From the NCBI GenBank assembly GCA_965649825.1, contig OZ287723.1:1-64000 (forward strand): 64,000 nucleotides of DNA, written 5' to 3'. Below are positions 9,192 through 9,209 of the stretch, piece after piece. Origin of the DNA: Penicillus capitatus (Eukaryota; Plantae; Chlorophyta). A program made the translations under genes and the position numbers. The first letter of the stretch is position 1; the number at the start of each line of letters is the position of its first letter. The notes beneath the pieces are model-generated. The model had not been told where the DNA came from. It ran no database searches and saw nothing but the letters and a program-made list of their open reading frames with translations.

Positions 9192-9209
9192 AGAAAGGCT
9201 GACTGGATT
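9192..9209 (+). promoter_or_regulatory. 18-nt motif AGAAAGGCTGACTGGATT upstream of rrs (copy 1)
   Basis: Identical copy lies upstream of rrl at 37168-37185 on the - strand; function inferred. Confidence 0.6.

Follow-up and report, generated by a model that had tools for sequence, protein, structure and literature searches.

A single 18-nt sequence, AGAAAGGCTGACTGGATT, precedes both of the physically separated rRNA genes in the window, the 64,000-nt stretch of contig OZ287723.1 from Penicillus capitatus that we analyzed, which is chloroplast DNA of a siphonous green alga (Bryopsidales). It is present in exactly two copies, at 9192-9209 (+) upstream of the 16S rRNA gene (rrs) and at 37185-37168 (-) upstream of the 23S rRNA gene (rrl), and comparison with related plastomes suggests that it is quite probably the upstream part of a duplicated sigma-70-type (PEP) promoter, one copy of which would serve rrs and the other rrl-rrf. 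The sequence is conserved, holds its position before rRNA genes, and adjoins a -35-type hexamer with -10-like hexamers beyond it. The duplicated box most likely belongs to an ordinary class of element, although it is well conserved and had not been described before.

Two motif copies and a dispersed rRNA operon

The rrs gene occupies 9242-10711 (+) and is matched over its full length by Rfam RF00177 (1424 bits). The rrl gene extends over 32577-37135 (-), as delimited by Rfam RF02541, which matches from 37132 downwards, together with the pairing of the 23S 3' end, TTTTTGATTC (32586-32577), with the 5' end, GAATCAAAAA (37135-37126), the latter of which opens with the 23S helix-1 sequence GAATC at 37135-37131. 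The two rRNA 5' ends lie 27.9 kb apart on opposite strands. A first-pass annotation of this DNA had described such a split operon, with ≈27 kb between its halves, and had placed the motif ≈34 nt before 16S and ≈35 nt before 23S; its positions and strands are confirmed, and from motif end to gene start we measure 32 nt for rrs and about 33 nt (range of 32 to 35 nt) for rrl. The motif is also richer in G+C than its surroundings, as had been noted, with 50% compared with ≈30% for the window.

No further copy had been noticed on that first reading, and neither an exact search nor one that allows ≤3 mismatches, on both strands of the whole window, returns a third match. The chance expectation at the 3-mismatch threshold is 0.06, and two matches were obtained in 0 of 100 shuffles. 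The 18-mer is likewise absent at ≤4 mismatches from a further 9.5 kb beyond the right edge of the window, taken from an 83,870-bp contig with the same sequence (ENA metagenome assembly; circular by its name suffix), which brings the coverage of the motif search to 73.5 kb of an 83.9-kb circular plastome. With a position-weight matrix for the 16-nt box module defined below, built from 11 instances, the two known sites reach 33 and 38 bits, whereas no other position in the window attains 10 bits. In the part of this plastome covered, the box is restricted to the rRNA genes.

Upstream of rrs, the box follows directly on ycf3 (8689-9186, +): the motif starts 5 nt past the ycf3 stop codon, and rrs starts 55 nt past the same stop, close to the ≈57 nt first estimated. 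The ycf3 gene has a canonical promoter-like site of its own, TTGACC-17-TATAAT, at 8635-8663, and the encoded protein is 88% identical to that of Pseudochlorodesmis sp., 81 to 83% identical to those of Boodleopsis, and 77% identical to that of Ostreobium quekettii. Downstream of rrs, a few nucleotides past the 16S 3' end, we find a perfect 32-bp hairpin with a 3-nt loop (10718-10784, +; -36 kcal/mol, z = -10.6), which is probably a 3'-end processing or stabilizing stem-loop for the now monocistronic rrs transcript. A 10-mer, ATGATAGCAA, is shared by the tip of this hairpin (10742-10752) and the ycf3 stop before the box (9183-9193), a coincidence that may be due to chance.

The rrl gene is transcribed divergently from a giant ftsH-like ORF (37272-44084, +), and the 136-nt intergenic region between them contains the motif, with 86 nt upstream of the rrl box. 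Because the two genes diverge, the rrl promoter must lie within these 136 nt. The ftsH-like ORF comprises 2270 codons, in which only an AAA domain is recognized by Pfam; its nearest homologs are also ≈2250 aa in length and share only 55% identity over 29% of its length. Within rrl, Rfam calls three group I introns (RF00028), and a fourth intron of ≈1 kb, unscored by Rfam, appears to split off the 3' exon and to carry a LAGLIDADG ORF (33022-33573; Pfam LAGLIDADG_2 match); the sarcin-ricin loop of 23S is at 32800-32812. The 5S rRNA gene, rrf (32394-32559, -), follows ≈17 nt after rrl. It is not called by Rfam even at E ≤ 0.1, and alignment with the 5S genes of two relatives (L010 and L199) reveals a ≈48-nt insertion (roughly 32478-32525) in an otherwise conserved sequence. 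Next to it, ARAGORN reports a "tRNA-Stop (tta)" at 32095-32400 (-), which is a caller artifact, since this is a trnL(UAA) split by a group I intron (Rfam match at 32142-32367).

The trnI(GAU) and trnA(UGC) genes are found ≈8 kb beyond the right edge of the window (L329, 1619-1765), where they are still adjacent to one another and lie beside clpP, away from both rRNA genes; there is no promoter box near them in L329. Their detachment from the rRNA genes indicates that the ancestral operon is now in three pieces, namely rrs, rrl with the divergent rrf, and trnI(GAU)-trnA(UGC). The same contig harbors genes with RNA_pol_Rpb1 domains (L329), which encode subunits of the plastid-encoded RNA polymerase (PEP), and related plastomes encode rpoB, rpoC, and rpoA, the last of these with a C-terminal domain in L200.

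Conservation of the motif in the Bryopsidales

Related plastomes were collected through homologs of Ycf3 and FtsH and through exact-pattern scans. Lack of conservation before the rRNA genes of relatives, which the first-pass annotation had named as evidence against a shared element, is not what we observe: eight further plastome lineages of the Bryopsidales keep the motif before rrs, rrl, or both. It is unchanged upstream of rrs in L001/L002, the Ycf3 of which belongs to a protein cluster named for Pseudochlorodesmis sp. HV01306a, and in L004/L005, which are syntenic with the window, and it is unchanged upstream of rrl in L079 and L201. In L010/L011, which have the same divergent ftsH/rrl layout as the window, the rrl copy differs by a single substitution (T9 to G). 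The L199 plastome has the motif before both genes, with the rrl copy unchanged and one change in the rrs copy, and the rrs copy of L200 carries three changes. By ycf3, L079, L199, and L201 are ≈90% identical to Pedobesia and L200 is 92% identical to Ostreobium; the nearest named genera by this gene, Pseudochlorodesmis, Ostreobium, and Pedobesia, represent one for each of the three suborders.

Among these relatives, the intergenic sequence outside the motif cannot be aligned, and the invariant part of the motif across the instances is AGAAAGGC..CTGG.TT. Retention of the motif while its flanks diverge indicates that the element is under strong constraint before both genes and across much of the order, and the original proposal of a shared functional cis-element for the two operon halves is upheld on these grounds.

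The exact-pattern scans of public collections returned 119 metagenome, 62 prokaryote-genome, and 6 viral contig matches. Only L079 and the group L023/L098/L121 are plastid among these, and nearly all others correspond to chance occurrences in bacterial DNA. Two contigs in which the motif is followed by TTGACA (L056 and L153) were set aside as bacterial, in numbers that match the chance expectation, and of the near-matches with 3 to 4 mismatches in L001, L006, and L010, those in L001 and L006 fall in unrelated sequence and were taken as chance. A loose promoter pattern applied to the viral contigs gave noise only, and the land-plant promoter string is absent from them. In L006 and L007, the place directly after ycf3, which is that of rrs in the window, is occupied by a large N6-adenine methyltransferase or Eco57I-like gene of restriction-modification type (10927-13335 and 3243-5651, respectively); L010 has genes of this type at 1-138 and 22723-25050.

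One plastid copy of the box lies outside the rRNA genes. In L121 (3380-3560, -), the box followed by TTGACA is found 110 nt upstream of an 813-codon ORF that has no Pfam match, and the same sequence is present in L023 and L098. The plastome represented by these three contigs is 82% A+T and has the gene cluster rpl23-rpl2-rps19-rps3-rpl16. The location of the box before a non-rRNA ORF indicates that the module is not tied to rRNA processing and argues for a promoter. In L121, the sequence past the -10 region, AATCAGGAAAAC, is similar to GAATCAAAAA at the 5' end of 23S, as though a promoter copy of the rrl type had been captured; the rrs leader of L199 also contains GAATCAAAAAC.

Proposed promoter architecture and competing readings

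Comparison of the instances shifts the register of the element relative to the 18-mer. A 16-nt box with the consensus AGAAAGGC[T/G][G/A][A/T]CTGG[A/G/T], which in the window reads AGAAAGGCTGACTGGA, is directly abutted by a -35-type hexamer, the first two bases of which are the final TT of the motif. Among the 11 instances, this hexamer is TTGACA in three (L199 rrs, L200 rrs, and L121), TTGATA in two (window rrl and L010), TTGATT in two (L199 rrl and L201 rrl), and TTGTTT, TTGGTT (L001), TTTATT, or TTTTTT in one each, such that nine of the 11 resemble TTGACA. Every instance also has a candidate -10-like hexamer 15 to 19 nt past the -35 hexamer, a sequence that is common by chance in DNA of 70% A+T. 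The textbook sigma-70 form is seen in L199 rrs (box-TTGACA-17-TACAGT) and in L200 rrs (box-TTGACA-17-TATTAT). The promoter originally suggested for rrs, CTGACT-N17-GATAAT, does not withstand this comparison: its two hexamers stand 17, 19, and 25 nt apart in three rrs copies, and the presumed -35 element CTGACT is altered to CGGACT or CTATCT in L010, L121, and L200.

In the window, the rrl box (37170-37185, -), identical to the rrs copy, is followed by the -35 hexamer TTGATA (37164-37169, -) and, after a 16-nt spacer, by the candidate -10 hexamer AATTAT (37142-37147, -), which is listed by the promoter scan. The predicted start at about 37135 coincides with the first base of the 23S helix-1 sequence, and the arrangement box-TTGATA-16-AATTAT-6-GAATC of the window corresponds to TTGATA-16-GATGAT-6-GAATC in L010. 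For rrs, the box (9192-9207, +) is followed by a degenerate -35 position, TTTTTT (9208-9213, +), the register of which is set by L199 rrs, L200 rrs, L121, and L001, and by a candidate -10 region (9231-9238, +) that offers either AATATT at 9231-9236 with a 17-nt spacer or TATTAT at 9233-9238 with a 19-nt spacer. The predicted start, at about 9243-9245, again falls beside the modeled 16S 5' end (9242), and L004 rrs shows the same geometry, with TATATT at a 19-nt spacer. The very poor -35 hexamer and the dependence of the -10 candidates on a 17- or 19-nt spacer are weaknesses of the rrs copy. In general promoter scans, promoter-like sites in the window are not in excess over shuffles, and canonical sigma-70-type sites are found elsewhere in the window as well.

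The functional unit would thus comprise the 16-nt box (about -51 to -36), the -35 hexamer, a 15- to 19-nt spacer, and a -10-like hexamer. The box might be contacted by a nuclear-encoded factor or by the polymerase itself, via sigma or the C-terminal domain of alpha, and the two rRNA genes would be driven by the same strong, co-regulated promoter once co-transcription had been lost. Promoter activity, the start sites, and a protein partner are what we infer here from sequence.

The box may also be read at the RNA level. In precursors with an upstream start, such as read-through products of ycf3 transcription, it would be bound by a helical-repeat protein of the PPR, OPR, or HAT type, which by holding off exonucleases would define or stabilize the pre-16S and pre-23S 5' ends and perhaps also the 3' end of the ycf3 mRNA. 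The size of 16 to 18 nt, the asymmetry, and the near-invariance of the element suit such sites, and PPR/OPR footprints (PPR10 sites, SOT1/PPR53 at the 23S 5' end, and RAP in the 16S 5' region) are also short, asymmetric, and highly conserved near rRNA 5' ends. Furthermore, in the window, L079, L199, and L201 only 5 to 7 nt separate the ycf3 stop from the box, a typical intergenic location for a protein cap. The promoter-like site upstream of ycf3 makes it probable that the box is transcribed at least there, and since ycf3 ends 5 nt before it, read-through transcripts that carry the box as RNA probably exist. However, PPR/OPR sites are located inside transcripts, at processed ends, whereas the algal box stands beside the -35 hexamer and upstream of the predicted start, and an RNA footprint leaves unexplained both the adjoining -35-type hexamer, a perfect TTGACA in three lineages, and the promoter-spaced -10 hexamer. 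In addition, the rrl copy is beside a divergent gene, with only those 86 nt upstream of it for another promoter, and an RNA 5' cap would set the end at the box, ≈50 nt upstream of the mature ends. We therefore regard an RNA-level role as improbable.

A further reading takes the box as a DNA site for a protein other than the polymerase, either an mTERF-type terminator or insulator against transcription from ycf3 or the ftsH region, or a nucleoid or replication site. Asymmetric DNA sites of ≈16 to 20 bp beside rRNA genes are typical of mTERF proteins, and the box is found directly after ycf3 in two arrangements, ycf3-rrs and ycf3-rrl. A terminator would, however, have no same-strand upstream gene to stop at the rrl copy of the window or in L010, since ftsH is divergent there, and the fixed abutment of the box to the -35 hexamer points to initiation, so that a site of this kind seems very unlikely.

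The least credible reading, to which we give hardly any weight, is a processing helix of RNase III type formed between leader and trailer, or a boxA-like antitermination signal. Bacterial rrn operons carry boxA before both 16S and 23S, in the leader and in the spacer, a layout that resembles the two copies seen here. To our knowledge the motif bears no likeness to the boxA consensus, and an antitermination box is rejected because the motif overlaps the -35 hexamer and so would lie upstream of the transcription start. A processing stem is disfavored by trailer pairing no better than that of shuffled motifs, with duplex energies of the motif and of the whole leaders against the 16S and 23S trailers equal to those of shuffled controls; the window contains no reverse complement of the motif at ≤3 mismatches, and the local folds of the two copies differ. 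Of the mechanisms put forward in the first-pass annotation, only a promoter or promoter activator fits these data, and a processing signal and an antitermination box find no support.

Relation to known rRNA promoters and to operon breakage

The nearest known counterpart of the proposed module is the land-plant rRNA promoter PrrnP1: like it, the algal module would be a sigma-70-type plastid rRNA promoter with a conserved block that is not A/T-rich and that abuts the -35 element. In PrrnP1, an activator element termed RUA (GTGGGA), said to have been described by Suzuki et al. in Plant Cell in 2003, reportedly lies directly upstream of the -35 element and is needed for activity. In every algal instance the 16-nt box likewise borders the 5' side of the -35 hexamer and thus takes the position of RUA. 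The two sequences share AGGCT-N4-GGATTGAC in the same register relative to the -35 element, which is TTGACG in PrrnP1. With this register fixed, the box agrees at nine of its 16 positions (AGGCT and GGA), in addition to the -35 element, a similarity that is suggestive, with a p value of roughly 0.01 for this single register. The RUA hexamer itself agrees less well, as GTGGGA in land plants and ACTGGA in the alga match at three of six positions and have only GGA in common.

For the land-plant side, the Arabidopsis PrrnP1 core is quoted in PMC13455382, and two land-plant loci retrieved via Rps7 (L322 and L323) read ATAAGAGGCT(C/T)GTGGGATTGAC(G/A), followed by TATATT or TATACT. When the algal weight matrix is applied to the land-plant loci, PrrnP1 is not the top site, and a prasinophyte-like ycf3 locus, sought as a bridge between the algae and land plants, contains no rRNA gene. 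Given the failure of the matrix and with no intermediate lineage found, we claim a positional and functional analogy with RUA rather than homology. The -35 element of PrrnP1 is essential and its -10 element is of limited importance (PMC12043724), and by the same token weak -10 hexamers would be tolerated in the proposed algal promoters. The two systems differ in layout, in that land plants use one promoter for the whole operon, with a leader of >100 nt, whereas the plastome of the window has two copies and almost no leader.

The position of the box also fits that of the UP element of the bacterial rrn P1 promoter, which lies upstream at about -40 to -60 and raises rRNA promoter output, and a contact with the alpha C-terminal domain, as in bacterial rrn P1, is possible given that related plastomes encode an rpoA that includes this domain. 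Bacterial UP elements are, however, A/T-rich and loosely conserved, whereas the algal box is 50% G+C and nearly invariant in a genome of 30% G+C. Its G+C-rich composition indicates that the box is not a UP element of the bacterial type.

According to Turmel, Otis and Lemieux (2015, PMC4524492), breakage of the chloroplast rDNA operon must have gone along with the acquisition of new promoters, and the Bryopsidales are one of the groups for which they list such breakage. That study names no promoter sequence, and the duplicated box is a concrete candidate, in which the "new" promoter would be a copy of the same module as opposed to an unrelated promoter. The gene order around the two copies varies: downstream of trnV-ycf3 comes promoter-rrs in the window, in L001 and L004, and in the Ostreobium-like L200, and promoter-rrl in the Pedobesia-like L079, L199, and L201; the loci compared are L079 1084-1669, L199 10001-10585 and 16315-18253, L201 10001-10591, and 8689-9242 of the window. 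Since the two promoter copies form short inverted repeats, recombination between them could have exchanged the genes that lie downstream. We speculate that inversions ending in the promoter copies could yield both the ycf3-rrs and the ycf3-rrl orders. A differential-elimination model is available for the inverted repeat (Turmel et al., PMC5430533), and, again speculatively, the inverted copies are compatible with former inverted-repeat promoters that remained after loss of different operon genes, or with simple duplication.

A more far-reaching combination, which we consider possible although rather doubtful, would have the box serve as the site of a dedicated factor or as a polymerase contact homologous to RUA, and hence as a very old element of green algae and land plants, with the two copies as relics of a lost inverted repeat and as substrates for inversion.

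Breakage of the chloroplast rRNA operon is frequent among green algae, and the new promoters that it requires have so far been assumed without sequence evidence (PMC4524492). The same promoter module on both operon halves would provide a simple route to coordinated 16S and 23S output without co-transcription, and for a lineage without promoter data the box would represent a short upstream element that acts in plastid rRNA transcription. Reconstructions of how the operon and the inverted repeat were lost might also use it as a marker. Finally, if the box were homologous to RUA, the unusual PrrnP1 architecture would be older than the chlorophyte-streptophyte split.
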